Shown here piece after piece: positions 10,066 through 59,491 of a stretch of DNA of 64,000 nt. Each line of letters opens with the position of its first letter. The first letter of the stretch is position 1. The notes beneath the pieces were generated by a model. The model did no database searches and had not been told where the DNA came from. It saw nothing but the letters and a program-made list of their open reading frames with translations. The stretch lies in sequence record MZ475891.1, one strand, 5' to 3'. The translations under genes were made by a program, and so were the position numbers.

Positions 10066-10109
10066 AGGTCAAAATGACCATTCTCTGTGATATGCGCCTA
10101 TGCTATAAT
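10066..10109 (+). promoter_or_regulatory. phage promoter, upstream-box class
   Basis: AGGTCAAAAT at 10066; CCTATGC-TATAAT with the -10 at 10104 (38 nt offset). Confidence 0.75.
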
Positions 10110-10137
10110 AGTTGCGAGCGCATTGCTCAATACAATC

Positions 10138-10151
10138 ATGCTGAGGAGCAT
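10138..10151 (+). promoter_or_regulatory. SD-in-tetraloop RBS hairpin
   Basis: ATGCT-GAGG-AGCAT before the ATG at 10156. Confidence 0.6.
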
Positions 10152-10155
10152 AACA

Positions 10156-10497
10156 ATGAACGCATCTACTTTCGATTTCTCTATCATCTGCACCGAGAGC
10201 TTCAACATTAATGAGCTGAACAAAATCGCCGTTGAGCTGAACAAGCTGATCACTAACTCGCAGATCAAAATTGAAGCCGCAGAGATTGACGATGAAGGCA
10301 CCGAGTGTATTCTTCTGGCTGTCGGTCTTGATGAAGACGGCGAAGAGACTGGCGACAACGGCTACTCGCTGCATCTGGACAACGGCGACTATCAGATCGT
10401 ATATCTCGGCGTGCCGCATCCTGACTTCGATAAGCACGAACTTGCGACCAGCGACTTTGAGTTGTTCATCAAATCAGTGAACGGCCTTGAGTTCTAA
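10156..10497 (+). CDS. small acidic hypothetical protein (113 aa)
   Basis: GAGGAG RBS, D/E-rich, first gene after a promoter. Confidence 0.8.
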   Translation: MNASTFDFSIICTESFNINELNKIAVELNKLITNSQIKIEAAEIDDEGTECILLAVGLDEDGEETGDNGYSLHLDNGDYQIVYLGVPHPDFDKHELATSDFELFIKSVNGLEF

Positions 10498-10506
10498 TCA
10501 CTAATC

Positions 10507-10550
10507 TGGCAGAAATCGCCGTTGTGTTTAGACGCTCAACGGCATACTAT
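10507..10550 (+). promoter_or_regulatory. phage promoter, upstream-box class
   Basis: TGGCAGAAAT at 10507; TACTAT at 10545 (38 nt offset); TTGTGT as -35 with a 17-nt spacer. Confidence 0.6.
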
Positions 10551-10599
10551 TATGTCTCTAGCGCAATGACGCGCTACAACAACGAAAGAGAGAAACAAC

Positions 10600-10854
10600 A
10601 TGAGCGAAGACGTTAAAGTAACAATCGATTTAGTAGCTGACTTTGTATCACGCACCGAAGTTGTGTTTGAAGACGGTCAATCATCTAATGACTGGCTCGC
10701 GCCGTATGATCTGCGCCTGAACGTAACTGAGCCTCAAGGGCCGAACGGCTACCCCGAAGTTGAAATCGTCGGCCAGCGCGATAACGTCTTGCGCTTCTTT
10801 GATGAGCAGATGCCTGACAGCGACATTACAGAAGACTCGCTTGAATCTGCATAA
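10600..10854 (+). CDS. small acidic hypothetical protein (84 aa)
   Basis: 20 D/E versus 5 K/R; sits between a promoter and a terminator. Confidence 0.8.
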   Translation: MSEDVKVTIDLVADFVSRTEVVFEDGQSSNDWLAPYDLRLNVTEPQGPNGYPEVEIVGQRDNVLRFFDEQMPDSDITEDSLESA

Positions 10855-10869
10855 GCAACAAACAACACT

Positions 10870-10891
10870 GTGGCGTTACGGCGCCACTTTT
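10870..10891 (+). terminator. intrinsic terminator
   Basis: GTGGCGT-TACG-GCGCCAC followed by TTTT. Confidence 0.75.
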
Positions 10892-10913
10892 CTATTTCTG
10901 ATCTGAGGTCAAT

Positions 10914-11453: not shown

Positions 11454-11470
11454 TCAACTAGCACAGGGAC

Positions 11471-12100: not shown

Positions 12101-12112
12101 ACAAACAACTCT

Positions 12113-12136
12113 AGCCTCGCATCGTGCGGGGCTTTC
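12113..12136 (+). terminator. putative terminator
   Basis: AGCCTCGCA-TCG-TGCGGGGCT followed by TTC. Confidence 0.6.
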
Positions 12137-12152
12137 TGCTTTGGAGAACACC

Positions 12153-12413: not shown

Positions 12414-12414
12414 C

Positions 12415-14456: not shown

Positions 14457-14755
14457 TCTACGAATGGGTCCACGACCTTGGAGGTAACGAAAGTCAGAAT
14501 CTGCCTATCTTGCCTCCAGACATTTATGCGTATGTGCGTGATTCCGTCACTGGCGCACGTACCCCAATCAACTTTGAAGGCCGCACCGAGTTACAGCGTC
14601 AAGACAAGAAAGTCATAGGCGTTGTCTACTGGTCTAATCGAGCTAATCTGATTTCATGGACGGGTGTAGAGCGCTTTCGTTTTACGCTGTATGTATTACG
14701 CGCCGCACGTAAGTCAAATGAACAACACGAGGAAGCTCAAGTCTGCACTAATTAG
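14432..14755 (+). CDS. hypothetical protein
   Basis: fills the gap up to the next promoter; start uncertain. Confidence 0.6.
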   Translation: MVQSMGDIIYEWVHDLGGNESQNLPILPPDIYAYVRDSVTGARTPINFEGRTELQRQDKKVIGVVYWSNRANLISWTGVERFRFTLYVLRAARKSNEQHEEAQVCTN

Positions 14756-14797
14756 GCTGAAATAGTCATCGCGCATAGTACGCTCCTGTGCTATACT
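14754..14797 (+). promoter_or_regulatory. phage promoter, upstream-box class
   Basis: AGGCTGAAAT at 14754; CCTGTGC-TATACT with the -10 at 14792 (38 nt offset). Confidence 0.65.
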
Positions 14798-14825
14798 TAT
14801 AGACGAAGCAACACATAATCTATTC

Positions 14826-14842: not shown

Positions 14843-15274
14843 ATGACTATCAACAAGTTTGACTTTCAAACACTGACTACTCCAGAACAATGGTCTTCCG
14901 CTGCTTGGGGTTTCTATCGTGACTTCGCAGATCGTTTACGCGATGTTATCGGCCGCGATGATCTTTTCTTCGACATTGAAGTTGACGGTGGCAGCGATAG
15001 TGACCAAGTTGCCGAAGAGATGGTCGATGATGGTGTGATTCATTTACTCATCTCGTATAAAAACGAAGATGAAGATTTCATTAACGCCAAAGGCGTCTGG
15101 CTGTTCCAAGTCACTTACCCGACAGAAAGTGATATTGACGGTGAGTGGTCTAACCGCTTCGTGGTCGATGTGCAGACCGTTGATATGGAAATTTTAGAGC
15201 TGGTGGATTTTGATAACGGCCATCCACGTTTGCTTGAAGATATTGCAGCGCGTGTTAATCACTGGTTAGTGTAA
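14843..15274 (+). CDS. acidic hypothetical protein (143 aa)
   Basis: AAGGAG RBS, D/E-rich, first gene after a promoter. Confidence 0.8.
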   Translation: MTINKFDFQTLTTPEQWSSAAWGFYRDFADRLRDVIGRDDLFFDIEVDGGSDSDQVAEEMVDDGVIHLLISYKNEDEDFINAKGVWLFQVTYPTESDIDGEWSNRFVVDVQTVDMEILELVDFDNGHPRLLEDIAARVNHWLV

Positions 15275-19184: not shown

Positions 19185-19391
19185 ATGAAAGACATTGTGC
19201 TACACACAGCCCTTTTATTGCCCATGATCGTTGTTAGCTTTTTGACTCTCCATTACATTCGCTTCCTGAGTCTGGGCTACTATATGCTGATCACTATGAC
19301 AGCATTCGTACTGGCCGTGTATGCGTGCAAGCGTCTCGCATCTGCTGTCACTAAAAATCGTTTTAACAAAGTGAGAATCAATCGTGGCTAA
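19185..19391 (+). CDS. small membrane protein (68 aa)
   Basis: two hydrophobic stretches, tight packing. Confidence 0.65.
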   Translation: MKDIVLHTALLLPMIVVSFLTLHYIRFLSLGYYMLITMTAFVLAVYACKRLASAVTKNRFNKVRINRG

Positions 19392-19929
19392 ATCTTTCGG
19401 TGTGTATCTGACGTTCATTCTGCGCCATCGACCGCAAGACATTGGCATTGCAATGGACACCCAAGGCTGGGTATCAGTTCCTGACTTGCTCGAACGTGCT
19501 CAATACAAGAAGCAGCCAATCACGTTAGAGATGTTGCGTGAAGAAGTTGCTACTGACGGTAAAGGCCGCTTCCAGTTTAACGCTGCCCACTCGCGCATTC
19601 GTTGTGTGCAGGGACATTCAGTTGAGCATGTGATTCTTAACCTCAAGCCGTACACGAATCACAATGACCCGCTGTATCACGGAACAGCCAGCAAGAACGT
19701 TGCGTCTATTCTTGCGCAGGGAATTCTTCGCGGTAAGCGTAAACATGTCCACATCGCGACCAACACCGCTACTGCTAAGCAAGTTGGTCAGCGTCACGGT
19801 GAACCTGTTGTGTTTGAGATCGACACGTATGCCATGATTACTCACGGCTATAAGTTCGAACGAGCCGAGAACGGTGTAATTCTTATCGAGCACGTCCCAT
19901 CCCGATATCTAAGGTTGGTAGAGTTATGA
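19384..19929 (+). CDS. kptA: NAD-dependent RNA 2'-phosphotransferase (KptA/Tpt1)
   Basis: ILRH, GWVSV, KGRF, IRCVQGHS, LYHGT, RKHVHIA, VGQRHG, NGVIL. Confidence 0.93.
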   Translation: MAKSFGVYLTFILRHRPQDIGIAMDTQGWVSVPDLLERAQYKKQPITLEMLREEVATDGKGRFQFNAAHSRIRCVQGHSVEHVILNLKPYTNHNDPLYHGTASKNVASILAQGILRGKRKHVHIATNTATAKQVGQRHGEPVVFEIDTYAMITHGYKFERAENGVILIEHVPSRYLRLVEL

Positions 19930-20333
19930 CTGAACAACGAATGAGTTATTGCGGTTCACGTTACATCCGTACATCCTCCGGCAGGTGGTATTTGCTTTTC
20001 GAACGAGCCGCCTGCTTGTGCATCAATCGTCATGGTACCCAGTACTGGCGAGCAGGTACGCAAGTGTGGAAGGATGTGTCTCTCTCAACTCGCGCCACTT
20101 TGGAGAACGAGTTTATCAGTCGTACCCGCAAAGATTTCAGGGAGTCGAAGTCTGCGTACAACAGATGGGGCAAGGTGATTCGTACACTCATTCTAGGTGC
20201 AGGCACTAACGAGCATCTCCACGATTTAGCGTCGATTCTTGAGTCGCTGAGACAGACGCATATAGGACGCAAGCAACAGCAACTGCGCACTACATTGGAT
20301 GAAATAGCTATTCAGTCGAGAACTACCCTGTGA
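19926..20333 (+). CDS. hypothetical protein (135 aa)
   Basis: ATGA overlap with kptA. Confidence 0.65.
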   Translation: MTEQRMSYCGSRYIRTSSGRWYLLFERAACLCINRHGTQYWRAGTQVWKDVSLSTRATLENEFISRTRKDFRESKSAYNRWGKVIRTLILGAGTNEHLHDLASILESLRQTHIGRKQQQLRTTLDEIAIQSRTTL

Positions 20334-20339
20334 TATAAT
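20296..20339 (+). promoter_or_regulatory. phage promoter, upstream-box class
   Basis: TGGATGAAAT at 20296; CCTGTGA-TATAAT with the -10 at 20334 (38 nt offset). Confidence 0.75.
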
Positions 20340-20505: not shown

Positions 20506-21645
20506 ATGATGCGTAACTTCACGGCAATCCTGCCAGTAACCTGTAATGCCGATTGTTCATTCTGCCCTGAGAAAGAAATGGAGCAGAAAGCTACGAACCG
20601 CCAGTGGCTGACTAACCTCATCTCGCAGATTAATGATCATGCTGGTGAGTTCGACCACGTTTCAATCTCTGGCGGTGAGCCTACGCTCAAGCCAAAGTTC
20701 CTGTTTGAAGTGATCGATGCGATTCGCAATCAAACGGATATCGATAAAGTTGGACTCACGTCTAACGGTCGCTTCCTGAATAAGCAAGACAGCATTTTTC
20801 AGTTTCTTGATCTGAACACAGACGACATGCTGGAAAGCAAGCTGTCCCATCTGAATATCAGCCGTCATTCATTCGATGATGCCAAGAACAACGAGATCAT
20901 GAAAGTGCGTTACACGTACACGCTCGATGATCTTGTGAAGTTTAGACGTCAACTCGGCACGAAGCTGAGCTTCCACATTAACTTCGTTATCAACGAGCAC
21001 AACATCGATAACATTGAGTGGGAGTTTGCACAGGCTAATCGATTCATGATGGAGAATCCGTGGATCGATGTAGTGTTCCGCGTTGACTATGCAAACGAAA
21101 AGCTGAATCGTCGTCTGCGTCGTTACGGCCTGTCTGTGCAAGCGTGGCGTGATGCAACTCGCGGCTCTATTCGTGATGAACGCATAGCGCGTGAGAAGCT
21201 GAAAAAGAAACCCAAACTCGTTCAGTTGTTTGATGGAGTGTTTAGCGGTACAACACAGGACAATGACGGTACATTTACCGATGCGTGTCCAAGCTGTTTC
21301 GTACATCGCAGCCAGAAGATTCATAACAACCACGCGTGGCTAAAAGCGTCCTCGTACGAACCGAACGTAGACGAAGAGGAATACACTGAGTATGTGTTCC
21401 ACATGGACGGCGAACTTTACTACGACTGGTCGCGTGCTGAGCCTGTGCCTGCCGTAGAGAAGAAGCCGCGCAAACACAAAGCCATTCGCATTATCCAGAG
21501 AGAAGTGGAAGAAGATGATATGGATGAAGACATGCCTGCATCTTCTCGTATGGGTTGTCAGTATAGAACTGTCGGATGTTCTTACGGTGAATCAGAATCT
21601 GCTGGTGGCTGTTCATTTAGATCTCCTGGCAGCTGTAGCTTTTAA
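20506..21645 (+). CDS. radical SAM protein with Cys-repeat C-terminal tail
   Basis: CNADCSFC (CxxxCxxC), ISGGEPTL, LTSNG, LNISRH; tail GCQY/GCSY/GCSF/SCSF. Confidence 0.9.
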   Translation: MMRNFTAILPVTCNADCSFCPEKEMEQKATNRQWLTNLISQINDHAGEFDHVSISGGEPTLKPKFLFEVIDAIRNQTDIDKVGLTSNGRFLNKQDSIFQFLDLNTDDMLESKLSHLNISRHSFDDAKNNEIMKVRYTYTLDDLVKFRRQLGTKLSFHINFVINEHNIDNIEWEFAQANRFMMENPWIDVVFRVDYANEKLNRRLRRYGLSVQAWRDATRGSIRDERIAREKLKKKPKLVQLFDGVFSGTTQDNDGTFTDACPSCFVHRSQKIHNNHAWLKASSYEPNVDEEEYTEYVFHMDGELYYDWSRAEPVPAVEKKPRKHKAIRIIQREVEEDDMDEDMPASSRMGCQYRTVGCSYGESESAGGCSFRSPGSCSF

Positions 21646-22910: not shown

Positions 22911-23174
22911 ATGGCAGTAGGTTTCGCCAAAGATGATGACGTGTCCAACACCGTCGAAACAAACGTGCTGAATGAAATCGACCGCGCTCGTTCTGAGTTG
23001 CGTGGCGCTGGTAGTTCGCACTGTATCAACCCTGACTGTGGTGCAGAGATTCCACTCATGCGCCGCGTAGCAATGCCGAACGCTCGCTACTGCGTTAGCT
23101 GTCAAGCACACCATGACGGTACGCCTGCTGTTGGCTACAATCGTCGTGGCTCTAAAGATTCTCAACTGAGGTAG
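22911..23174 (+). CDS. ybiI: DksA/TraR C4 zinc-finger protein, YbiI-like
   Basis: CINPDCGAEIP..RR.A.P.ARYCVSCQ; ends YNRRGSKDSQLR like enterobacterial YbiI as recalled. Confidence 0.85.
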   Translation: MAVGFAKDDDVSNTVETNVLNEIDRARSELRGAGSSHCINPDCGAEIPLMRRVAMPNARYCVSCQAHHDGTPAVGYNRRGSKDSQLR

Positions 23175-25786: not shown

Positions 25787-26767
25787 ATGCGTTTTGGTTT
25801 CGCCTGTAAACTGCTGGATGACAACGGTAAGCAACCGTACACGAACAAGAGCCTGAGCTATGCTCACTTCTCCAAGCTGTCTCAGACAGAGCAGCAAGAA
25901 AAGCTGGTGCTCGTCGTCACACACAATCTGACCTCGTTGCTTGAGATGATCAGACACGTTGGTCGTCTGCGTACCGACTTGCGTATGTTTCGAATCACAA
26001 GCGAACTACTTCCGCTGTTCACGCACCCGATGGTCACACGCATGTATCTCCAAACACACATGACCAAACTGACAGACACGATGTTGGCAACGTGTGGTGC
26101 AGCGGCTAGACGTCTCGGTGTGCGACTGTCATTCCACCCAGGTCAGTTTACCGTGCTTGCGTCTGACCGACCCGACGTTATGCTCAACTCGATTAACGAA
26201 ATGGAGTATCACGCCTACTGTGCGCAGGCTATGGGCTACGGTCGTAAGTTCCAAGATTTCAAAATCAACATTCACCTGAGCGGTCGTCGTGGTGCCGCAG
26301 GTTTCAGAGACGCCTACTCTCGTCTAAGCGATCATTGCCGCAAGATGATCACGGTAGAGAATGACGAGTACACTTCCTCGATCGAGGATTGTCTTGAGCT
26401 TGCCGACATTTGTCCTGTTGTTCTCGACATTCACCATCACTGGGTAATGACTAACGAATACATTCAGCCGACAGATGATCGTGTTCAACGTGTCATTGAC
26501 TCGTGGCGAGGCGTTCGTCCTGTTGCGCATTACTCTGTGTCACGCCCAGAGTTCATACCGTCTACGGGTCTGCCTGATCAGAACAAGCTAGAAGCAAAGT
26601 CTGCCTCGCTGCGTGCTCATTCCGACTACTACCACAACGACAGCGTAAACGAGTGGGCCCTCAGCTTCGAGCAATTCGACCTGATGTGCGAGTCTAAAGC
26701 GAAGAATCTAGCACGCACGAAACTAGCCCTTTTTAAGGGCAACTCTGCACAAATATGGTCAAAATAA
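25787..26767 (+). CDS. uvsE: UV-damage endonuclease UvsE/UVDE
   Basis: FGFACK, MFRITSELLP, RLSFHPGQFTVLAS, ITVENDE, LDIHHHW, RPVAHYS, LRAHSDY. Confidence 0.93.
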   Translation: MRFGFACKLLDDNGKQPYTNKSLSYAHFSKLSQTEQQEKLVLVVTHNLTSLLEMIRHVGRLRTDLRMFRITSELLPLFTHPMVTRMYLQTHMTKLTDTMLATCGAAARRLGVRLSFHPGQFTVLASDRPDVMLNSINEMEYHAYCAQAMGYGRKFQDFKINIHLSGRRGAAGFRDAYSRLSDHCRKMITVENDEYTSSIEDCLELADICPVVLDIHHHWVMTNEYIQPTDDRVQRVIDSWRGVRPVAHYSVSRPEFIPSTGLPDQNKLEAKSASLRAHSDYYHNDSVNEWALSFEQFDLMCESKAKNLARTKLALFKGNSAQIWSK

Positions 26768-26800
26768 GGCTTGTTTTAGAAGGTGCCCCTATGATACACT
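26756..26800 (+). promoter_or_regulatory. phage promoter, upstream-box class
   Basis: TGGTCAAAAT at 26756; CCTATGA-TACACT with the -10 at 26795 (39 nt offset). Confidence 0.7.
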
Positions 26801-28962: not shown

Positions 28963-30183
28963 ATGGCTATCATTTCCGCAGAAGAACAAGCGCGTCTGGA
29001 TTCACTTGCTGCTATCGTAGCTAAGATGTGGGATCAAGGCGGCCCTGCTGTGCGTGATGCTCTGCGCTACGTTGCTAACCAAATGCTGAGCGACGAGCAT
29101 TCATTCCTGTACGAAGAAGTGCCTGGTGTAACGCCTGACATTGAATCAGTCTACCACCACCTGAGCGATCTTCCACTGACGGGTATGACCCGCATCGTGC
29201 GCAATCCTGACTTGATCAGCTCGCTTGAAGATCTGATGAACAAAAATGAGCGTGAGATCTTCGGCTCTGCCGTGCGTAACAGCGCATACACTATGTTCAA
29301 ACTTTTACCGCAGAATGAAACCTCGGTGTTCTGCCATCCAGGTAAAGGTGCTACCTCTCGCACCCAGCCTCGTCAAGTCGCTGAAAGACTGCATCGTGGT
29401 TTAAGCTACATGTTGTCCGTGCACGGTCTGGACGCGTATATCAAAAAGGCTGACAATCAAATTCGCTCTTACGGGCATACTCGCCTAGCCTCTCTGGTAA
29501 TCGCAGTCGCAGTCAAAGGCGAACGCAGTGTTGCTACTCGCATCGTACCTCTGTGGTGTATGGACAATCACACCACAGAGGTGGGCACGATTGAACTTGA
29601 TCAGGATATCCCGAACGATAAGCCTTCAACCTCAGTTGAGGTAGAAACTGATATCCAAGTTTGGCCGAAGTTTGAAGCAAAACAACTTAGAGATATCCTG
29701 CTCAAGCATGGGAATTATATCGAGTCTAAGCTGCGCGGCATGGACCGCGAAGAATTAGATGATACCTATGAAGCCTTCGTTGATGCATACCTTAACAATA
29801 CTCACGACGAGGGTGATGAAGACGAAGATGATGAGTGGGACGAAGAAGAGGATGAAGACGAAGAAGATGCCTTCTGTCCTGAAATCCCTTCGCGCCTAGC
29901 TCTACCTGTCGAACTGCCTATTGTTAATCTCGAACGTCCGAAGTTAGACATTCGCCCAGGCATGCGTTTGAAGACCAAAAAGCCTAGACAGTCTCATATT
30001 CAGAATATTCTGATTGATCCAGTTTGGCACGCAGTTGACCCACAAGACGAGAACAATATTCATTATTTCAGTGTGTCTATTGTTGCCCGTGATACTGTCG
30101 GTCATAAGGCTATTTCAGCTTCGCCGCTTGAAGCACTGACTATCTCCAACGTGCTGATGCAGATCGCTGAAACTAACACTTAA
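28963..30183 (+). CDS. hypothetical protein with acidic tract (406 aa)
   Basis: long ORF; DEGDEDEDDEWDEEEDEDEED. Confidence 0.8.
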   Translation: MAIISAEEQARLDSLAAIVAKMWDQGGPAVRDALRYVANQMLSDEHSFLYEEVPGVTPDIESVYHHLSDLPLTGMTRIVRNPDLISSLEDLMNKNEREIFGSAVRNSAYTMFKLLPQNETSVFCHPGKGATSRTQPRQVAERLHRGLSYMLSVHGLDAYIKKADNQIRSYGHTRLASLVIAVAVKGERSVATRIVPLWCMDNHTTEVGTIELDQDIPNDKPSTSVEVETDIQVWPKFEAKQLRDILLKHGNYIESKLRGMDREELDDTYEAFVDAYLNNTHDEGDEDEDDEWDEEEDEDEEDAFCPEIPSRLALPVELPIVNLERPKLDIRPGMRLKTKKPRQSHIQNILIDPVWHAVDPQDENNIHYFSVSIVARDTVGHKAISASPLEALTISNVLMQIAETNT

Positions 30184-30184
30184 C

Positions 30185-30228
30185 TGGACAAAACAGCGCT
30201 TCTTAACGAGGCGCTTTTCTGCTATAAT
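30185..30228 (+). promoter_or_regulatory. phage promoter, upstream-box class, overlapping a terminator-like hairpin
   Basis: TGGACAAAAC at 30185; TGC-TATAAT with the -10 at 30223 (38 nt offset); AGCGCTTC...GAGGCGCT+TTT in the spacer. Confidence 0.75.
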
Positions 30229-34505: not shown

Positions 34506-35651
34506 ATGACTAATTCATCTCTGCCTTTCGTTTCTTGGTTCGAACGTGACAACTACTTTGATGACATGCTTGAGCGCCTCGATCTCAAACGTCTCTGGGG
34601 CTATGTTGAAAAGAACAACGTGGTCAACAAGACTAAATACAATCTGCCTAACCTCACTGCTTACCACACTACCGAGCACATGAAAGAAGTTGCGTGCATC
34701 GCGTCCTCTCTACTGCACCGCGAGTCGAACCACGACTGGCAGATTCGTCTGATGGAATATCCGTTAGTCGTCGCGTGCCTTTTCCACGATATGAATCACA
34801 GTCTGGGTAAATATACTGATGACGTGAACATCAACCATGCGCTCGTTGCGTTTAATGACTATCTTAATAGCAAAGATGAGAATCAGGGCAACGACAAGCT
34901 GCTGTTTGAATATCGCGATCAGATCTGTGCGCTGATTCGTTGCACCCAATTCCCGTTCCATGACTCACGCAAGCCAACTAACCTGATGGAGCGCTGCATT
35001 CGTGATGCGGATATTCTATACGGCCTGCAGGATGACGCAATGCCTGCTGTTGTGATTGGTCTACTGGATGAAGTGAACGTTCGTTTGGCCCCAGAAAGCA
35101 AATACTCCACCGCACAGTGGGTGGCAGGTCGCATTGAGTTCCTGTTGTCCTGTGAGATGTTCACCGAAACTGCTAACAAAATCTTCTGTGATGCTCTCAG
35201 CACCAACAGTCCAAACTATCACGGAAATGTGCTGCAATCTTTCCTTGAGATGAAAGTGCGGCTGATCGATGTTCGTGCAGGTAAGTTACGTGGTGGCGAT
35301 GTTATCTGGACAGACACAGAGAACGACTCAACCTATCGTCCACGCCAGATCAGAAACATCGGCAATGAAGCGCTGCCAGACGTTAACGTGTATTTCACTG
35401 ACGGTCAGGCTTGTGGTTATCGTAGCGGTGAGACCGTTCAGTTGCTGCCTAATACAGAGATGGTAAAGCTCGAAGACATTGTAGTTGGCGACATTATTCT
35501 TGAGCCTGCACAGGGTGAAGTGAAGCGCGATCTACATCGCATCGTAAACATCGCTAACGCCGGCCTGCACGAGAGCGTGCTTTATCTCGAAAATGGCGGT
35601 GTGTTTACGTCAGCGCCCAAAGGCCGCGTCTGTCGTGTAGTCAGCAAATAA
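34506..35651 (+). CDS. HD-domain phosphohydrolase with tandem C-terminal beta-repeats
   Basis: YHTTEH, ACLFHDMNH, IRDADIL; C-terminal AGKLRGGDVI and LEDIVVGDII repeats. Confidence 0.8.
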   Translation: MTNSSLPFVSWFERDNYFDDMLERLDLKRLWGYVEKNNVVNKTKYNLPNLTAYHTTEHMKEVACIASSLLHRESNHDWQIRLMEYPLVVACLFHDMNHSLGKYTDDVNINHALVAFNDYLNSKDENQGNDKLLFEYRDQICALIRCTQFPFHDSRKPTNLMERCIRDADILYGLQDDAMPAVVIGLLDEVNVRLAPESKYSTAQWVAGRIEFLLSCEMFTETANKIFCDALSTNSPNYHGNVLQSFLEMKVRLIDVRAGKLRGGDVIWTDTENDSTYRPRQIRNIGNEALPDVNVYFTDGQACGYRSGETVQLLPNTEMVKLEDIVVGDIILEPAQGEVKRDLHRIVNIANAGLHESVLYLENGGVFTSAPKGRVCRVVSK

Positions 35652-35652
35652 C

Positions 35653-35696
35653 TGGACGAAATAAGGCTACTCTGCTTAGGCTGCTTATGCTATAAT
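35653..35696 (+). promoter_or_regulatory. phage promoter, upstream-box class
   Basis: TGGACGAAAT at 35653; CTTATGC-TATAAT with the -10 at 35691 (38 nt offset). Confidence 0.75.
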
Positions 35697-39395: not shown

Positions 39396-39692
39396 ATGTC
39401 TGAACAAACTCAATTGCCTGGCCAAGTCGTTATCGTTTGTGTTATGCAGGAATCTGATTCTTTCATGGGTCAGAAGTTTGATGGCTATGTGTACTTGCTC
39501 AATCCAGAACACAAAGAGATGTTTGAACGTCACCTGCAGGCGCACAAAAGCCGTGAGAACTATTCACACATTATCAGCCACGCTAATCACTATATAACTA
39601 GCACGGGCTTCGATGCGCTTCATGCTGCTATACGCAAAGACGCAAACAGACCCTGGCTGTGGTCAGATACTGATTACACGATAACTGCATAA
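39396..39692 (+). CDS. hypothetical protein (98 aa)
   Basis: GAGGT RBS. Confidence 0.7.
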   Translation: MSEQTQLPGQVVIVCVMQESDSFMGQKFDGYVYLLNPEHKEMFERHLQAHKSRENYSHIISHANHYITSTGFDALHAAIRKDANRPWLWSDTDYTITA

Positions 39693-39695
39693 ATC

Positions 39696-39739
39696 TGGAC
39701 AAAATAGAGGTAGCTAGAAAAAGCTGCCCCTGATATACT
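39696..39739 (+). promoter_or_regulatory. phage promoter, upstream-box class
   Basis: TGGACAAAAT at 39696; TGA-TATACT with the -10 at 39734 (38 nt offset). Confidence 0.8.
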
Positions 39740-39767
39740 AAAAGCGTAGCTTGTGCTGCGCTTTTTT
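39740..39767 (+). terminator. terminator-like hairpin directly after the promoter
   Basis: AAAGCGTAGC-TTGT-GCTGCGCTTT followed by TTT. Confidence 0.5.
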
Positions 39768-40443: not shown

Positions 40444-40881
40444 ATGAAATTTGATCAAGCCCCAACGAAAGCACAGCTCGTACTGCTGGCACTCGCTCTC
40501 GAATCCGTTCTCCTCTCTATGGAGAAAACGTTTATCAACCGTAACCTGCTGGAGCAGTTACTTGCGAAGTACGGCATCTCGTTTAACGACCTGAAAGAGT
40601 TGCGCGAGTACGGTGAAAAGCATTCCGCCATCGGCACCAGCGTTGCTCAAGTTATGGAGATAGCTGCATTGAATGTGGCTCATCTGAAAACAGAGCCGAA
40701 GCCTGAATACAGTCAAGACGACCTTGATCTAATTCGCGTAGAATACGAGCCAATCGATACGTCTGTCCTGCGTCAGGGCGCTGTGAATGATGGTGTTATC
40801 ACAGTGCAGCAAGCAGCCACTTTTGAGCGTGATCAGATACTGACTGCTATTCTTGAGTACCGACTGCGCTCAGAAGCATAA
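40444..40881 (+). CDS. hypothetical protein (145 aa)
   Basis: GAGG RBS. Confidence 0.7.
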   Translation: MKFDQAPTKAQLVLLALALESVLLSMEKTFINRNLLEQLLAKYGISFNDLKELREYGEKHSAIGTSVAQVMEIAALNVAHLKTEPKPEYSQDDLDLIRVEYEPIDTSVLRQGAVNDGVITVQQAATFERDQILTAILEYRLRSEA

Positions 40882-40884
40882 ATC

Positions 40885-40928
40885 TGGACAAAATCGTGGT
40901 TGTAGCAAAAACCGTCCTATGTTATAAT
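40885..40928 (+). promoter_or_regulatory. phage promoter, upstream-box class
   Basis: TGGACAAAAT at 40885; CCTATGT-TATAAT with the -10 at 40923 (38 nt offset). Confidence 0.8.
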
Positions 40929-40985
40929 AGAGATGTAGCGTAGACGTGAGGTATGCGCTATAAATTGAATGACGCGTTTTTGCTT

Positions 40986-41078
40986 GACTGTAAGGTAGCG
41001 GTATCTTACAGTCCTTTTTCAAGTGGCTTCGAAGTTTGAGGCTTCTTGCGAAAGGGTTCGATACCCTTTAAGCGCTTT
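40986..41078 (+). ncRNA. structured leader RNA (copy 1) with a tRNA T-loop-like hairpin
   Basis: 12-bp hairpin GACTGTAAGGTA/TATCTTACAGTC, then CTTTTT, a AAGTG...CGCTT stem and AAAGGG-TTCGATA-CCCTTT. Confidence 0.4.
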
Positions 41079-41136: not shown

Positions 41137-41958
41137 ATGCCAGAAGCACGCAAACCTCGCCCAGCTGATCGTTTCGCTAAAGCCCGTGCAGAGAAAAACT
41201 CACCGGAGCGTCAAGATGCGGCAGCCCAGCGCACGTATAAAGACACTCCGCCTAAATCTGTTCAGGTGAAACTTGATGCTGTGGCAGCTTCTAAGAAGAA
41301 AGTTTCACGCGGCCCCAAGGCATCTCGTCCGCGTCAGTCGCCTGTTGTTGACGCAGCACCAAAGCCTCGCATTCGTGATGAGGAACGTGTGTACAATCTC
41401 GTACACATGATTCTCTCTGCGTGGAAAGCCGATGCAGAAAACGCGGCGGTAAGTGTGGGAATCATTAAAGTGTCTCGCCGTAAGATCGAGGGTGCGTTAC
41501 GCGATCTCAAGAATACGCGCTTCACTAAAATCCCAGGCTTAATCAATGACGTGCTTGTCTACAATGAACTGGTAGCTGAGTTCGGACAGTGGGTGTACGT
41601 CGAGCACGACAGTCCTGATTGGATTTTTGTGCGCCTGCCTGAAAACAGCACGCCTGTGATTCGCGCTGACATTAGTTACGCCAAGACGGGTGAAACTTCC
41701 ACGTCTGTTTCGACTTCTAGTGAAGTTCTGCTGAAAGATCTTAGCGAAGACGAAGAAGATGAGATCCCCGATAATGTCGAGTACGACGATGCGGACGAGA
41801 CTGACGAAGACGAAGCTGAGCCGTATGACTACAGCGCTTGGTCGCTGAGTGACCTGCAGGCTTATGCAAAGCGTTATGACTTCCTGCAGCCCGACACTGA
41901 GGGGTTCGATGATCGCGAGAAGTTGATAGCAGCCATCGAGCTGGGGGAACAGCACTAA
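41137..41958 (+). CDS. hypothetical protein: basic N-terminus, acidic linker, C-terminal HeH-like motif (273 aa)
   Basis: AAGGA RBS; SAWSLSDLQAYAKRY...DREKLIAAIE. Confidence 0.8.
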   Translation: MPEARKPRPADRFAKARAEKNSPERQDAAAQRTYKDTPPKSVQVKLDAVAASKKKVSRGPKASRPRQSPVVDAAPKPRIRDEERVYNLVHMILSAWKADAENAAVSVGIIKVSRRKIEGALRDLKNTRFTKIPGLINDVLVYNELVAEFGQWVYVEHDSPDWIFVRLPENSTPVIRADISYAKTGETSTSVSTSSEVLLKDLSEDEEDEIPDNVEYDDADETDEDEAEPYDYSAWSLSDLQAYAKRYDFLQPDTEGFDDREKLIAAIELGEQH

Positions 41959-41967
41959 GCACAAATA

Positions 41968-42012
41968 TGGACAAAATAGTGGTAGTATCTAAAGCATGAC
42001 CTGTGCTACACT
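41968..42012 (+). promoter_or_regulatory. phage promoter, upstream-box class
   Basis: TGGACAAAAT at 41968; CCTGTGC-TACACT with the -10 at 42007 (39 nt offset). Confidence 0.75.
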
Positions 42013-42015: not shown

Positions 42016-42135
42016 GATCGAATGCCTTGTAGTTTTTTGACTGTGAGTTACTTTCCGGCTCACAGTCCTTTTTAAAGTGCTCTCACAAGAACGCTTTAAA
42101 AAGCACAGACTGCCTGCGCTTTTGATAGACAGCAT
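42016..42135 (+). ncRNA. putative ~120-nt small RNA (copy 2 of the structured element)
   Basis: ORF-free interval between two promoters; hairpins GACTGTGAG/CTCACAGTC (42039-42067) and CTTTTTAAAGTG/CGCTTTAAAAAG (42068-42103). Confidence 0.45.
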
Positions 42136-42140
42136 AAATC

Positions 42141-42184
42141 TGGACAAAATCATGGTTGTATCAGAATGCTGCCTGTCATACACT
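42141..42184 (+). promoter_or_regulatory. phage promoter, upstream-box class
   Basis: TGGACAAAAT at 42141; CCTGTCA-TACACT with the -10 at 42179 (38 nt offset); TTGTAT as -35. Confidence 0.75.
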
Positions 42185-42245: not shown

Positions 42246-43838
<1,593 letters not shown>

Positions 43839-54846: not shown

Positions 54847-54870
54847 GTCAAATTTGTCTCTACACTAAGC

Positions 54871-54915
54871 TGGACAGATCGTGGGTAGCGTCTGACGCTC
54901 TGCCTATGTTATAAT
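54871..54915 (+). promoter_or_regulatory. phage promoter, upstream-box class, driving the topoisomerase genes
   Basis: TGGACAGATC at 54871; CCTATGT-TATAAT with the -10 at 54910 (39 nt offset). Confidence 0.7.
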
Positions 54916-54986: not shown

Positions 54987-57014
54987 ATGGCGAAAACGCC
55001 TAAAGCCGCAAAAGTCAAAAAGGGTGACGGCTCCCAAGATGGCTTCACTATCGCAGAAGGCCTCGACGGGATTCGACTAAACCCTGGCATGTACATGGGT
55101 CAACAGGGTGCGGACATGGCGTATCGCGCTGTGAAAGAACCTGTGGACAATGACTACGATGAATACATCGCAGGTCGTAACAAGTTGATCGAAGTGGTCA
55201 TTGATTACGATAGCGACCTGAACATCGTAGCTGACCAAGCAGGCGGCATTCCTACCGACTTTAAGAAACTGAAAGACGGTACGAAAGAAACGATCATGAC
55301 CGCAGCGTTTAGCCGTGTTCATGCGGGTGGTAAATTCAACGATCAGGCATATAAGACCTCTGCTGGTACACACGGTGTAGGTGTAGCTGCACTGAACGCA
55401 ATCTCCAGTCAGTTGCGTGTGTGGTCAATGTACAAAGGCAGTTGCGCTTATCAGATGTGGCAGTGTGGCGAAGTCAAGTCGGGCAAAGACCCTAAGAAAG
55501 TCAAGACCATCGACAAAGACGTTATGAGCCTGCTGCGCGATAAGAAGCACAGCAAGTACGGTACTGTGGTAGCGTGGACGCTTGACCAGACTGTTGTGTC
55601 TGCTGATGCACAGCGTGGTAAGAAGCTGCCTAAGAACTATCGACACGCTGCTCCTAATCCAGCTCAGCTTGGTGAGTGGCTGCGTAACATGTCAATGCTC
55701 AACCCAGGCCTTGAGATTCGCCTGACGTTGATCAAAAAGGGCAAGCGCAAAGAGTTCACTTTCATCAACAAGAAAGACCTGAACTATGTTGTGAAGACTA
55801 TGTGTGAAGAACGCGAGCTGGGAACTGTAGGAAAGCCGTTCATCTTCAAGTCTGACAATATCACGGCTGCGCTTGCTTGGACAGATCATGCAGACACTGA
55901 CAACTTCCTCAGTTTCGTTAACACCAGCCCAACAGTTGATGGCGGGTGGCACGTAGTAGGTTTCCGTGATGCGCTGTTTGATGCAATCAAGCCGTTCATG
56001 AAAGAACCGAAAGGTAAGGGCAAGAAGAAGAAGCAGGGCTTCAAACAAGAAGACTTGTTGATTGGCCTGACCGGTATGTTCGACTGGCGTATGCACGGTG
56101 CTCAATACACCTCGCAGGTAAAAGACAAGCTGGCCAGCCGCGTCGAGAAAGACGTGTACGAAATGCTGAAAGATGCTTTCGTGAAATACTTCAAGGACAA
56201 TAAGAAGGTCGCTACGACAATCATCAAGCGTGCCGAAGCGATGAACAAGGGACGTGAAGAACTCAGCGCCGTCGTTAAGTCTATGGCTGATACGAAGAAG
56301 AAGCTGAAAGGTAACGCACTGCCTGCCGACCTCGTTGTCGCAAACAAGTGTAAGCCGCATGAGCGTGAGCTTGTCGTGGTGGAAGGGGATTCTGCTGGTG
56401 GTACTGCAAAAGATGCGCGTAACCCTGACTATCAGGAAGTTATGAAAGCTGGTGGTAAGCCGCTGAACGGTCTGAAAGCAAGTCTGGCTGACGTACTCAA
56501 GCACAAAGAAGTGCAGGGTATGCTGGTGAGTATCGGTGCTGACCTGAAATCGCTTGACCCGAAAGCAGAAGCACCAAAGTTGAGCACGAAGAATCTGCGT
56601 ATAGGCAACATCCTGTTTCTTGCTGATGCTGACCCAGATGGCTTCCACATCAACGTGCTGTTCCTCGGCGTTATCTATCGATTGCTGCCTGACTTGATGA
56701 AAGAAGGCCGTGTGTGGATTGTTGACGCACCGCTGTACAACGTTATCCATCAGGGCAAACACTACGGTGGTATGACGTTTGAAGAATGCCGTGCTAAAGC
56801 GCCGTCTGCTGTAAAAGACAAAGACATTGTACGCGCTAAAGGTTGGGGTGAAGTTGAGCCTGACGTGCTTGAAGCAATCGCGTTCAATCCGAAAACTCGT
56901 CGTCTCATTCGTGTTAACCCGTTTGAGAACGTTGAGCAGGAACGTTTCTTTAGAGGTGTAGTTGCAGAAGATGCAGTTCACCGTCGTCGCTTGCTCGGTC
57001 TGGAGGCAGCATGA
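54987..57014 (+). CDS. gyrB: type IIA DNA topoisomerase, ATPase/TOPRIM (GyrB/ParE-like) subunit
   Basis: IRLNPGMYMG, EPVDNDYDE, HAGGKF, SAGTHGVGVAALNA, VEGDSAGG, DADPDGFHI, RAKGWGEV; AGGAG RBS. Confidence 0.93.
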   Translation: MAKTPKAAKVKKGDGSQDGFTIAEGLDGIRLNPGMYMGQQGADMAYRAVKEPVDNDYDEYIAGRNKLIEVVIDYDSDLNIVADQAGGIPTDFKKLKDGTKETIMTAAFSRVHAGGKFNDQAYKTSAGTHGVGVAALNAISSQLRVWSMYKGSCAYQMWQCGEVKSGKDPKKVKTIDKDVMSLLRDKKHSKYGTVVAWTLDQTVVSADAQRGKKLPKNYRHAAPNPAQLGEWLRNMSMLNPGLEIRLTLIKKGKRKEFTFINKKDLNYVVKTMCEERELGTVGKPFIFKSDNITAALAWTDHADTDNFLSFVNTSPTVDGGWHVVGFRDALFDAIKPFMKEPKGKGKKKKQGFKQEDLLIGLTGMFDWRMHGAQYTSQVKDKLASRVEKDVYEMLKDAFVKYFKDNKKVATTIIKRAEAMNKGREELSAVVKSMADTKKKLKGNALPADLVVANKCKPHERELVVVEGDSAGGTAKDARNPDYQEVMKAGGKPLNGLKASLADVLKHKEVQGMLVSIGADLKSLDPKAEAPKLSTKNLRIGNILFLADADPDGFHINVLFLGVIYRLLPDLMKEGRVWIVDAPLYNVIHQGKHYGGMTFEECRAKAPSAVKDKDIVRAKGWGEVEPDVLEAIAFNPKTRRLIRVNPFENVEQERFFRGVVAEDAVHRRRLLGLEAA

Positions 57015-57268
57015 TGTTCAACAACGCAAAATGGTCTGACGGTACGATGCTACGTTTTCTCGATATGCCTGACGTCCAGCATCCGCCAATGACCGAAGAA
57101 CAACACAAGCAGTATGAGGCGTTAATGGCAAAAGGTCGTGAGTTGTCGAAAAACGTTACTGTATCTGCATTCAGTGTAGTTGACGGTAAGCCTGCTAAGC
57201 GTGTGCAGGTGCAGATGAGTCGCACAACTCTCGATAAGATTAATGCGATGCACTCAGGAGATCAGTAA
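57011..57268 (+). CDS. hypothetical protein (85 aa)
   Basis: GGAGG RBS, ATGA overlap with gyrB. Confidence 0.7.
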   Translation: MMFNNAKWSDGTMLRFLDMPDVQHPPMTEEQHKQYEALMAKGRELSKNVTVSAFSVVDGKPAKRVQVQMSRTTLDKINAMHSGDQ

Positions 57269-57507
57269 TGCTCAAGGGTAAGAAAGTCAATCAAGCACCA
57301 TCGTGTGTTGCACGAATCTTCCCTGTAGTTGCAGGTACTGAGGATTGGCCAATCCCGCTGTTCGATATGCCTGACTTTCATATCAGCATGAGCGAGGAGC
57401 AGAAAGCTCGTCTTGATTCTGCTATGGCTAACGTCAAGCAACACATTAAAGATAGCCCGTACAACGGGAAGCTATTCTTTACTATGCCTGGAGATGCCCA
57501 TGAATAA
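57268..57507 (+). CDS. hypothetical protein (79 aa)
   Basis: AGGAG RBS, TAATG coupling. Confidence 0.7.
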   Translation: MLKGKKVNQAPSCVARIFPVVAGTEDWPIPLFDMPDFHISMSEEQKARLDSAMANVKQHIKDSPYNGKLFFTMPGDAHE

Positions 57508-57739
57508 GTTCCAGCGTCACATTAAATCTCTGCCCGAATCTGGTGCCAGCTTTCAGCAAGCAGCACCGCTAGGCCGTACTGTCGTAACACGTTCAGCGGG
57601 TATCACACGCGGTGTAACTCGCATGGCTTATCCTCAGTTGCAGCAAATCCCACGCAACTTATCGGGCCTGAATGGTGTGAACGTTCGTCGCATCGATATT
57701 AACTTGGATGAAAACGTTTTCATCCAGACGCATTCGTAA
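57500..57739 (+). CDS. hypothetical protein (79 aa)
   Basis: GGAG RBS, overlaps the previous stop. Confidence 0.65.
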   Translation: MNKFQRHIKSLPESGASFQQAAPLGRTVVTRSAGITRGVTRMAYPQLQQIPRNLSGLNGVNVRRIDINLDENVFIQTHS

Positions 57740-57748
57740 GAGGCTGGC

Positions 57749-59410
57749 ATGCCAATCAAACCTAAGAAAGTCAAAGCGGCCAAAGCAGTTAAGCCTGCTA
57801 AAGCGACCGCTGTTGCAAAGCCACTTAAAGTCAAAGTGAAATCGAAAGCCGTTTCTGTCGATGACATTAAGACAAAGAAAAAGTCGAAAGAAGTCGCCGC
57901 AGTGCAGACAGGCGCATCGCTCTATCCGATGATTGGTCAAGACGAATCTAACATTCGTGACCAGGGCCTCGCAGATTACACACGCCACGCGCTGGGTGTG
58001 TACGGTTCTTACGTTGTTGAAGACCGAGCTATCGCTGACTATCGTGATGGCCTCAAGCCTGTGCACCGTGCGCTGTTGTGGTCGTTGTCTGATCTTAACT
58101 TGCGTCCTGGTGGTGCGTTCAAGAAATCTGCGCGTACTGTTGGTGACACGATCGGTAAGTATCACCCGCACGGCGATGCAGCCTGTTACGGCGCAATGGT
58201 AACGATTGCAAACACAGTGCCACCGGCTGTTGCTGGTTCTGGTAACTGGGGTAGCCCTGTTGACCCTGCTGCTGCTATGCGTTATACCGAAGCGAAGATG
58301 AGTAAGTTCACGGGTACGTTCTTGCTCGACTCTGATTACTTAGAAGTTGTACCTCGTGTGCCTAACTTCTCAAACGATCTTGAGCTACCGCTTTACTTGC
58401 CTGCTCTGCTGCCGTACATGTTGTTCAATGGCTCTGTGCCTGCACCAGCGTACGGCGTCAAGTGTGGTAACCCGTCATTCAGCTTCGCGTCCGTATCTAA
58501 AGTCGTGTGTGAGATGCTGAGCGGCAAAGAGTACACAGCGAAGACGCTTGCGAAGACGCTTGAGATTCGCCATGAGTTCGGCTGTATCGACGTTAGCTCT
58601 GACGAAGATATGTACCAGCTTATCTCAACAGGCCGTGGCAAAGTCACATACGAACCGCTGATTAAGATCGATGAGAAGTCGAAGACCATCACGATTCAAA
58701 CGTATGTGCCTGCTGGCATGTCCAATACTGCGGGTATCACTAAGAAGCTGGAGAAGATTTCTGAGTGGCCAGGCATTAGCTCCGCAGCAAACGCCAGTGG
58801 CAAGAAGAACAAGAACGCAGGTCCTTACGGTGCAGCGTTTGAGTTCCGCGTACGTGGTAGTGAAGACCAGTTGTACGAACTCGCCTCACGCATTCAGAAG
58901 GAAGTGACTGCTGGCGTCAACTACAATCTGGGCGTTACGATTCGTCGCGCCGATAAGCCGAACACCTTCAAGTATCTGAACTATCTGGATTACTTCAAGG
59001 CGTGGGTAGCGTATCGTATCAAACTCGAAACAGCCATGCTGAACAACAAGCTGGCCAAAGCAGAGAAAGCCCTGCACTTGCAGCAAGTTTATCTGTGGGC
59101 AGTTGACAACATGAAGCAACTGCTGGCTGCCTTGCCTAAAGTGTTAGTCGCAGAAGACCCAGACAAAGCGCTGGCCAAAGCGTGCAAGATTCCAGTTGAA
59201 GATGCGAAGATCATCCTCGACCGTCAAGTGCGTAAACTCGCCAAGCTGGAACGTGGTGGTCTGATTGCCAAAATCAAAGACATTAAGGAAGAGATTGCTG
59301 GTTATAAGGCAGGCTTGAAAGCGCCAGGCAAACATGCAGCACAGAGCACGGCTGCGAAAGTCAAAGCGTACATCAAATCACCTGATGATAAGCTGCCCGT
59401 AAGTCTTTGA
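57749..59410 (+). CDS. gyrA: type IIA DNA topoisomerase, breakage-reunion (GyrA/ParC-like) subunit without a C-terminal beta-pinwheel
   Basis: RAIADYRDGLKPVHR, KKSARTVGDTIGKYHPHGD, GNWGS, AAMRYTEAKM (catalytic Tyr); only 553 aa. Confidence 0.93.
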   Translation: MPIKPKKVKAAKAVKPAKATAVAKPLKVKVKSKAVSVDDIKTKKKSKEVAAVQTGASLYPMIGQDESNIRDQGLADYTRHALGVYGSYVVEDRAIADYRDGLKPVHRALLWSLSDLNLRPGGAFKKSARTVGDTIGKYHPHGDAACYGAMVTIANTVPPAVAGSGNWGSPVDPAAAMRYTEAKMSKFTGTFLLDSDYLEVVPRVPNFSNDLELPLYLPALLPYMLFNGSVPAPAYGVKCGNPSFSFASVSKVVCEMLSGKEYTAKTLAKTLEIRHEFGCIDVSSDEDMYQLISTGRGKVTYEPLIKIDEKSKTITIQTYVPAGMSNTAGITKKLEKISEWPGISSAANASGKKNKNAGPYGAAFEFRVRGSEDQLYELASRIQKEVTAGVNYNLGVTIRRADKPNTFKYLNYLDYFKAWVAYRIKLETAMLNNKLAKAEKALHLQQVYLWAVDNMKQLLAALPKVLVAEDPDKALAKACKIPVEDAKIILDRQVRKLAKLERGGLIAKIKDIKEEIAGYKAGLKAPGKHAAQSTAAKVKAYIKSPDDKLPVSL

Positions 59411-59448
59411 AAATCTGTAAATAGACTATGATAAACTCTGCACTAAGT

Positions 59449-59491
59449 TGGACAGAAGCCGCTTGAGATTATTCTTAGTCTATGATATACT
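59449..59491 (+). promoter_or_regulatory. phage promoter, upstream-box class
   Basis: TGGACAGAAG at 59449; TTGAGA as -35 at 59463; TGA-TATACT with the -10 at 59486. Confidence 0.65.

Follow-up and report, generated by a model that had tools for sequence, protein, structure and literature searches.

The last 64 kb of the genome of Erwinia phage pEa_SNUABM_13 (MZ475891.1, 264,714 bp) contain 13 copies of a composite module in which a conserved upstream block stands at a nearly constant distance from an extended -10 element, always on the coding strand and always within one arm of the genome. We estimate at roughly 0.5 the probability that these modules are early promoters of a jumbo phage dependent on the host RNA polymerase (RNAP), where sigma70 would use the extended -10 element and the upstream block would likely contact a protein specific to the phage lineage. 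This reading draws on direct observations of the motif, its spacing, strand, distribution and conservation, on its concerted evolution, and on the covariation in the hairpins that accompany it. The window, here, is the whole analysed stretch of 64,000 nucleotides (record 200,715-264,714, 100% identity); coordinates refer to the window unless the record is named, and negative numbers are promoter positions.

Anatomy of the module and its chance level

All 13 pairs of an upstream box and a -10 hexamer listed in a preliminary description of the window are present, at the coordinates given in Table 1. The fixed distance claimed for them holds within one nucleotide, the offset from the start of the box to the start of the -10 hexamer being 38 nt at nine sites, 39 at three and 37 at one. 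The finer features ascribed to the sites were recovered as well: the extended -10 TG reported for eleven (at -15/-14 in 11 of the 13, the exceptions being 10507 and 42141), the CCTRTG reported upstream of the -10 hexamer in most (exact in 7/13), the CACTAA reported ahead of several (this sequence or a variant with one difference precedes six sites), and the often poor -35 hexamer (only two or three of six matches to TTGACA in 12 of the 13 sites).

The box, which had been placed near -50 and upstream of the -35, spans -50 to -41 and turns out to be the proximal half of a 22-nt block, tctGCAnAA-N3-TGGNCAAAAT, at -62 to -41. The distal part of this block, tctGCAnAA, occupies -62 to -54, and its G-59, C-58 and A-57 are conserved as strongly as the box; in the matrix derived from the window sites, these three bases are followed by an A-rich part and then by T-50 G G A C A A A A T-41. 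Further downstream, all window sites have T-35, and G-33 is frequent, being the commonest base at its position. At 17-bp spacing, these two correspond to bases 1 and 3 of a -35 hexamer, leaving a vestigial -35 of the form T-W-G. The -10 hexamer has invariant T, A and T at positions 1, 2 and 6 (13/13), within the core TGnTAYAMT. The weakest of the 13 sites is 10507, with no TGn and with TACTAT as its -10; site 59449 has the best -35 (TTGAGA) yet the weakest upstream block.

The pattern GGNNRAAA-N29-TAYAMT has eight matches compared to the 0.02 expected, and none of 100 dinucleotide shuffles reaches eight. With a 19-nt matrix of the upstream element, the 13 sites score 18-27.6 bits and the next best site in the whole 264-kb genome 14.3 bits. 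A matrix built from 41 sites of five other phage genera places six of the 13 window sites above every shuffle maximum; on this matrix, the CACTAA-type sites score weaker for the upstream element alone. A generic sigma70 consensus scan of the window between 26 and 45 kb misses all seven sites located there because their -35 hexamers are poor, and returns 14 promoter-like sites versus 20.9 expected. In the non-coding DNA of the window, the box is found on five of the seven best sigma70-like sites.

Distribution in the genome

Phage pEa_SNUABM_13 is a jumbo myovirus related to Alexandravirus, and 342 of the 344 features in its record carry the label 'hypothetical protein'. The plus strand carries its genes from about 186 kb across the record origin to 46 kb, and the minus strand those from 46 to 186 kb. 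Alexandra has been grouped with Y3, Yoloswag, the Dickeya phages AD1 and JA, and Pseudomonas phage PaBG in a PaBG-like clade, for which at least one encoded sigma70-family factor was reported (PMC7412058); according to the literature, detecting this factor takes profile-profile methods. Jumbo phages without a polymerase of their own rely on host RNAP (PMC13282480, a review).

The genome was scanned on both strands in five pieces that together cover all but 714 nt (record 200,001-200,714). The scan yields only the 13 sites, with the window-derived matrix as well as with the family matrix of 78 sites described below. All 13 lie on the plus (coding) strand at record 210,780-260,163, that is, in a single 50-kb arm, and the minus-strand block, with the tail sheath gene among others, has no module. 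The next annotated feature begins 43-72 nt downstream of 11 of the 13 modules (ten coding genes and a tRNA-like stretch), and the remaining two have leaders of 234 and 274 nt; several modules begin on the stop codon of the preceding gene. Among the genes of this arm are those for topoisomerase II, a DksA-like gene, homologues of the dUTPase and UV-damage endonuclease genes annotated in relatives, and numerous small genes of unknown function. In Y3, of which 136 kb were scanned (1-50 kb and 175-261 kb), sites are found only at 207-257 kb.

Conservation in related phages

The comparison set consisted of a syntenic 40-kb stretch from eight relatives: the Alexandravirus members pEa_SNUABM_1, pEa_SNUABM_18 and Dickeya phage AD1, along with Y3 (Sasquatchvirus), Yoloswag (Yoloswagvirus), pEa_SNUABM_5 (Rivsvirus), Yersinia phage fHe-Yen9-02 and Dickeya phage JA29 (Salmondvirus). 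Iteration of the matrix ended with 78 sites in the nine phages, every one of them on the coding strand and not a single one opposite. Beyond the 13 of the window, 65 copies occupy syntenic positions in the eight relatives, which represent at least five other genera with Erwinia, Dickeya and Yersinia as hosts. TGn is present in 63 of the 78 sites, the -10 hexamer matches the consensus in at least five of six positions in 59, and the offset is 38 in 56, 39 in 14 and 37 in eight. The -35 region is barely above random, with a mode of three of six matches compared to two of six at random positions. The information content is 1.9-2.0 bits at C-58, A-57, G-49 and A-43, 1.8 bits at T-35, and about 1.4 bits at G-59, A-55 and G-48.

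The syntenic placements include those after the UV endonuclease gene, before the gene for a 530-aa protein and before topoisomerase II. The UV-damage endonuclease homologue is followed by a module in seven of the eight relatives, JA29 having no site there; the module before the 530-aa gene has syntenic copies in all eight, seven of which were aligned. In the footprint upstream of topoisomerase II, compared across the nine phages, the only invariant columns are motif positions, namely TC, the CA of GCA, the first G of GG, one A of an A-tract, T-35, TG and TA.AAT; the flanks and the spacer vary.

Homologues of two marker proteins, of 530 and 1001 aa, were found only in 57 records of Erwinia, Dickeya and Yersinia phages, and because of this confinement the Pseudomonas members of the PaBG group fall outside the comparison. 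A scan of IMG/VR with a degenerate composite pattern returned 21 stretches, of which seven are known isolates of the clade, and revealed no wider family; the remaining matches are single ones, about at chance level by a rough estimate.

Lineage-specific bases in the upstream block

The form of the box depends on the phage lineage. It is TGGACAAAAT in the Alexandravirus-type genomes, including Dickeya phage AD1, AGGCTGAAAT in Y3, TGGTCAAAAT in Yoloswag and pEa_SNUABM_5, CGGCTAAAAT in fHe-Yen9-02 and TGTCCAAAAT in JA29. Concerted evolution was tested on seven syntenic promoter groups from six genera, with 5000 permutations. At -51, -50, -47 and -46, promoters are more alike within a genome than syntenic promoters are across genera: the difference summed over these four positions is 0.93 against a null of 0.07 +/- 0.07, and 0 of the 5000 permutations reach 0.93. 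The within-genome likeness persists when only four Erwinia amylovora phages are used. The neighbouring positions -40 to -33 show the opposite, as vertical descent predicts. Judging from these comparisons, the uniformity within genomes favours either a phage-specified reader or short-tract gene conversion, the pattern being compatible with both, whereas a host reader alone would not predict positions typical of a lineage.

A somewhat doubtful alternative, although one with several points in its favour, is a plain UP element contacted only by the C-terminal domains of the host alpha subunits (alpha-CTD), with the G/C positions setting the shape of the DNA between the A-tracts. UP elements are used by T4 early promoters (PMC2988021), and early promoters must act before any phage protein exists; moreover, the scanned early genes yielded no DNA-binding protein. 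The block lies at -62 to -41 in a fixed register to the core (offset 38 +/- 1 in 78/78 sites), which is the position of a UP element. Its two A-tracts, at -57 to -53 and -45 to -41, fall within 1-2 bp of the A-rich parts of the UP consensus, which Estrem et al. (1998) reportedly placed at -57 to -53 and -44 to -41. However, the UP consensus, AAAWWTWTTTTnnAAAA, is A/T throughout, and the block is not: C-58 and G-49 carry about 1.9 bits each, and G-59 and G-48 about 1.4. The central T-tract of the distal UP subsite is absent from the block, its place being taken by yTGGNC. Furthermore, the box is uniform within each genome and differs among four genera that share one host, which a plain UP element would leave unaccounted for, unless gene conversion is responsible.

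Gene conversion figures more prominently in another alternative, which we consider quite unlikely. The modules would be reader-free mobile cassettes akin to the PeSLs, kept similar by duplication and homologous exchange and serving as a substrate for the shuffling of early genes. PeSLs are built in the same way, with a stem-loop between the -35 and -10 elements or over the -10 (PMC2839356, PMC4122927), concerted evolution is a product of gene conversion, and the phage encodes a UvsX-like recombinase. The module at 10507 is a case in point: its stretch from the -10 to the end of the 5' hairpin is a paralogous copy of a cassette found before the 530-aa gene in Y3 and Yoloswag, standing here before a different gene and with a different ribosome-binding region. 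The pattern of conservation argues the other way, being punctate, with single positions invariant over at least six genera and their neighbours free to vary, and the adjacent positions -40 to -33 follow vertical descent. In addition, a relative of 96% identity shows no gain or loss of genes (indels) at the modules, and gene content and order are largely syntenic across the genera.

Two simpler assignments of the box were tried and rejected. As a second -35 of a tandem promoter, it resembles the consensus (TGGACA versus TTGACA) only in the Alexandravirus-type genomes, and no -10 stands 16-18 bp downstream. Nor does any site of the Fis, IHF, CRP or PhoB type fit, in a comparison made by eye.

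A second, strand-specific motif

The scanned genome contains another motif, aaTCTGTAAAt(a), with 32 of 32 copies on the coding strand of the respective block, against about 8 expected. Window examples are at 2892, 13134, 23879, 28081, 51197, 51222, 51877, 51935 and 59414. Over nine loci, the counts on the coding versus the other strand are 73:1 for TCTGTAAA and 53:0 for CTGTAAAT. Copies on the minus strand lie 38-48 nt before start codons (for example, at record 146834, 163867, 177120 and 183762), and the motif comes without a second conserved element. It resembles the T4 late promoter TATAAATA. This motif is probably a promoter class of the phage's own sigma-type factor, serving the remaining genes. 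If it is the target of a phage factor, the 13 box promoters would therefore form the host-polymerase, and hence early, class.

That the 13 modules themselves are read by a phage sigma factor or a phage polymerase, rather than by host sigma70, is highly improbable. A sigma70-family factor has been reported in the clade (PMC7412058), and the -35 region of the modules is non-canonical, but TGnTATAAT with T-W-G 17 bp upstream is the host housekeeping pattern, the other strand-specific motif would suit a factor of the phage better, and the minus-strand tail-sheath block is devoid of modules.

The two motifs are similar in one part. In relatives, the distal portion of the early block, tCTGCAAAt (-62 to -54; for example, L014 19709-19717), is one base away from aTCTGTAAAt, with C at the differing base in 77 of the 78 early modules; by a rough estimate, the chance of such a 9-of-10 match is about one in a thousand. 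This similarity bears on the idea, unlikely in our assessment, that the block is an operator or decoy for early shut-off, where a phage protein bound at -62 to -41 would displace alpha-CTD or the polymerase. The binder could be the phage sigma-type factor that reads TCTGTAAAT, given the near-identity of the distal half, with C in 77/78 early modules, whereas CTGTAAAT occurs 53:0 in favour of the coding strand. Lineage-specific positions would suit a phage-encoded binder, and the mechanism of early shut-off in T4 is itself still unexplained (PMC2988021). Arguing to the contrary, the strict spacing of 38 +/- 1 is more typical of an element that contacts polymerase, the distal half in pEa_SNUABM_13 itself reads GCACTAA or GCATAAA and resembles the second motif less, and no binder was identified.

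Hairpins downstream of the -10 element

The 34 nt after the -10 element have a mean z-score of -2.0 relative to shuffles and fold better than either of two controls, random genome segments (p = 9e-9) and the DNA 5' of the block (p = 1e-4). A perfect stem of at least 5 bp follows the -10 at 37 of the 78 sites, compared with 15% of control positions. The enrichment is confined to this location; under a strict criterion, hairpins in the spacer are not enriched (12/78 versus 11%). In the cassette of the 530-aa gene, a consensus hairpin begins 10 nt after the -10, and three of its five pairs show compensatory changes. The hairpin downstream of module 8 is found also in SNUABM_1, SNUABM_18, AD1 and Y3. 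With the predicted start about 7 nt after the -10, the stem would begin 3-4 nt from the 5' end of the transcript. In E. coli mRNAs, 5'-terminal hairpins guard against 5'-end-dependent decay; by analogy, the 5' stem-loop, which is usually present in the modules, may protect the phage transcripts in the same way. The spacer hairpin of module 6 (30195-30215), with its T-run, would terminate the upstream operon within the next promoter.

What may read the upstream block

Under the reading that we favour, host sigma70 holoenzyme would recognise TGnTAYAMT, with the -35 reduced to T-W-G at 17-bp spacing, and the 22-nt block, at its fixed distance and helical phase, would supply the upstream contact that the weak -35 does not. 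The A-tracts would be placed like the two alpha-CTD subsites of a UP element. The bases G-59, C-58, G-49 and G-48, together with the lineage-typical positions -51, -50, -47 and -46, would most likely contact a protein specified by the phage lineage.

Several points weigh against this reading. Start sites, timing and polymerase usage, sigma70 included, are all predicted from sequence resemblance, the identity of the upstream reader is inferred, and extended -10 promoters can function without any upstream help. No helix-turn-helix, sigma, anti-sigma or MotA-like domain was detected among the 53 window proteins with Pfam and PHROGs, nor were homologues of MotA and AsiA; the same search produced no DNA-binding domain and hence no candidate reader. 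In the inspected parts of the Y3 and fHe-Yen9-02 records, no gene is labelled as a sigma factor or an RNA polymerase subunit. A picture of one reader for one site is also at odds with the coexistence, in pEa_SNUABM_13, of AGGCTGAAAT at 14754 with TGGACAAAAT elsewhere; the Y3-type box is likewise found before homologues of the gene at 35739-36413 in SNUABM_18, AD1 and Y3. Finally, gene conversion confined to the conserved block could yield concerted evolution without a reader, and all the concerted positions sit between invariant positions that might provide the homology for conversion.

More specifically, we tentatively propose, as a possibility that falls well short of probable, that a phage-encoded, co-evolving protein docks on the upstream block, either as a virion-delivered activator at promoters without a -35 or as a sigma-type factor for which the block is a decoy. 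Delivery of an activator with the virion is pure conjecture. Were the activator version true, host polymerase would be recruited to -35-less promoters at time zero. Were the decoy version true, a phage sigma-type factor would use the distal half, a one-base variant of TCTGTAAAT, as a non-melting site, resulting in early shut-off. Either would be a takeover of host polymerase not yet described for jumbo phages that lack their own.

Individual modules and their surroundings

Table 1. Predicted promoter modules in the window. Scores are from the family model built from 78 sites; offset is from box start to -10 start. CDS, coding sequence; MFE, minimum free energy.
Module	Position	Strand	Box start	-10 start	Offset (nt)	Score (bits)	Context
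1	10054..10109	+	10066	10104	38	37.4	-10 TATAAT; TGn; precedes CDS 10156-10497; hairpin GAGC/GCTC directly after -10
2	10495..10550	+	10507	10545	38	19.7	precedes CDS 10600-10854
3	14742..14797	+	14754	14792	38	36.3	box AGGCTGAAAT; precedes CDS 14843-15274
4	20284..20339	+	20296	20334	38	36.6	in 3' end of CDS 19926-20333; 7-bp hairpin downstream
5	26744..26800	+	26756	26795	39	50.0	overlaps stop codon of CDS 25787-26767; homologues of this CDS in relatives annotated UV-damage endonuclease
6	30173..30228	+	30185	30223	38	36.6	terminator-like hairpin and T-run 30195-30215 in spacer; spacer MFE -12.2, z -3.9
7	35641..35696	+	35653	35691	38	52.3	precedes CDS 35739-36413
8	39684..39739	+	39696	39734	38	48.5	followed by hairpin and T-run 39740-39765
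9	40873..40928	+	40885	40923	38	47.2	before non-coding stretch annotated as 95-nt tRNA-Glu
10	41956..42012	+	41968	42007	39	48.8	followed by hairpin and T-run 42039-42072
11	42129..42184	+	42141	42179	38	45.7	no TGn; precedes 530-aa gene 42246-43838
12	54859..54915	+	54871	54910	39	33.8	precedes topoisomerase II large subunit gene 54987-57014
13	59437..59491	+	59449	59486	37	28.9	274-nt leader before CDS 59765-61039, with strong hairpin (z -5.0)

Module 13 lies in a gene-free leader of 354 nt (59411-59764) that contains, in order, a TCTGTAAAT site (59414), the module, a hairpin, a degenerate copy resembling the box near 59587 and, with its -10 at 59653, a canonical promoter that lacks a box (TTGACC-N17-TATAAT). 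Downstream of module 9, a tRNA-Glu(ttc) of 95 nt is annotated at 40981-41075, and ARAGORN makes the same call; there is no Rfam tRNA match at the gathering score, and a T-arm-like GGGTTCGATACCC is present, yet the length of the stretch exceeds that of a standard tRNA. Module 9 may here drive a tRNA-like RNA that is degenerate or unusual. Two related hairpins with T-runs, at 40986-41018 and 42039-42072, share TTGACTGTRAG...CTYACAGTCCTTTTT.AAGTG and follow the early promoters at 40885 and 41968, respectively, at a distance of about 30-60 nt. Their predicted output would be short RNAs of roughly 85 and 55 nt, unless they act as attenuators. Two other stretches are gene-free by annotation, 5653-6054 (402 nt) and 7878-8132 (255 nt), the latter C/T-rich and located 3' of a terminator-like hairpin; both are devoid of early modules.

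Functions are recognisable for several window proteins, namely the UvsX-like recombinase, an exopolysaccharide (EPS) depolymerase, both topoisomerase II subunits, a Tpt1/KptA phosphotransferase, a radical SAM enzyme and a DksA/TraR zinc-finger protein. The UvsX-like recombinase (71-2470) is about 800 aa long and spans a PHROG profile of 506 positions from end to end; it therefore contains a large insertion, possibly an intein. The DksA/TraR C4 zinc-finger protein (87 aa, 22911-23174, Pfam 2e-10) is encoded in the early arm and is retained in SNUABM_1, Y3, fHe-Yen9-02 and JA29, and a GTP pyrophosphokinase is also annotated in Y3 (Y3_066). Bases -6 to -4 of the early promoters are mostly A/T-rich, the kind of discriminator that is not inhibited by DksA/ppGpp. 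Module 4 is surrounded by genes for a Tpt1/KptA-family RNA 2'-phosphotransferase (19384-19929, Pfam 4e-44) and a radical SAM protein (20506-21645), and Y3 additionally annotates a macro-domain O-acetyl-ADP-ribose deacetylase (Y3_013); together, these genes hint at ADP-ribose or RNA-end chemistry in early infection.

Significance and comparison with known systems

Capture of host RNAP in the first minute of infection by jumbo phages without a polymerase has been little studied beyond T4. The module defines the predicted early regulon of a whole clade, with 57 sequenced phages of which several have been proposed for the control of fire blight, and sets this regulon apart from the second, phage-specific promoter class. 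The invariant G/C positions and the lineage-typical bases can be swapped between phages of the same host, which would be a clean test for a phage reader. On the practical side, the modules offer compact promoter and 5'-hairpin parts for expression in Erwinia and its kin, and allow proper annotation of records that are almost wholly labelled hypothetical.

The preliminary description took the modules for an undescribed promoter class. The class is real and conserved in the clade, and we found no earlier description of the box motif in the reachable literature, which did not cover the Y3 genome paper; the novelty was nevertheless overstated, given that T4 early promoters and PeSL cassettes are of the same kind.

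The UP elements of rrnB P1 and other strong E. coli promoters, with alpha-CTD sites at -40 to -60, share with the block their position and register to the core, as well as two A-rich subsites about one helical turn apart. They differ from it in that the G/C positions of the block are conserved like the A-tracts, the distal T-tract is absent, and the sequence of the block varies with the phage lineage despite the same host. The MotA/AsiA middle promoters of T4 likewise combine a host -10 with a phage-typical box at a fixed distance. However, the MotA box, centred at -30, takes the place of the -35, whereas the box described here is at -50 to -41 and a T-W-G remnant stays; the sequences of the two boxes are unrelated.

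The similarity to the early promoters of T4 is closer. These have been described as 'uber' promoters that combine UP, -35, TGn and -10 elements with additional, unexplained consensus positions, aided by the virion protein Alt (PMC2988021; Hinton 2010), which in T4 modifies alpha. Both are phage early promoters for host sigma70 polymerase (predicted, for the modules) with TGn and a near-consensus -10, and both have consensus positions that known polymerase contacts do not explain. Both also occur in many copies before small genes of unknown function and on the coding strand only (here 13, all on the plus strand). Conserved A-rich elements lie upstream in each case, near -42 and -52 in T4. The differences are that T4 has a good -35, which is vestigial here, and that the upstream part in T4 is A/T-rich, whereas the block described here has near-invariant G/C and lineage-typical bases. 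A counterpart of Alt did not emerge in the present phage, where no search aimed at one was made.

The other close counterpart is the PeSL, in which a strong early promoter comes with an A/T-rich upstream part and a stem-loop, with a consensus that differs between lineages (PMC2839356, Arbiol et al. 2010; PMC4122927, Comeau et al. 2014). PeSLs often have the stem-loop between the -35 and -10 elements, unlike the modules, in which it mostly comes just after the -10. For the modules, no association with gene gain or loss was seen in the 96% relative or in the gene order across genera, and they belong to a clade of jumbo phages, the group of Alexandravirus, Sasquatchvirus, Yoloswagvirus, Rivsvirus and Salmondvirus. 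What the two have in common is a repeated composite of about 100 bp that joins a strong early promoter, a conserved upstream part and a stem-loop. In both, the stem-loop can sit in the spacer as a terminator, as at 30195-30215, and the consensus of the cassette varies by lineage, with the cassette at 10507 relocated before another gene.

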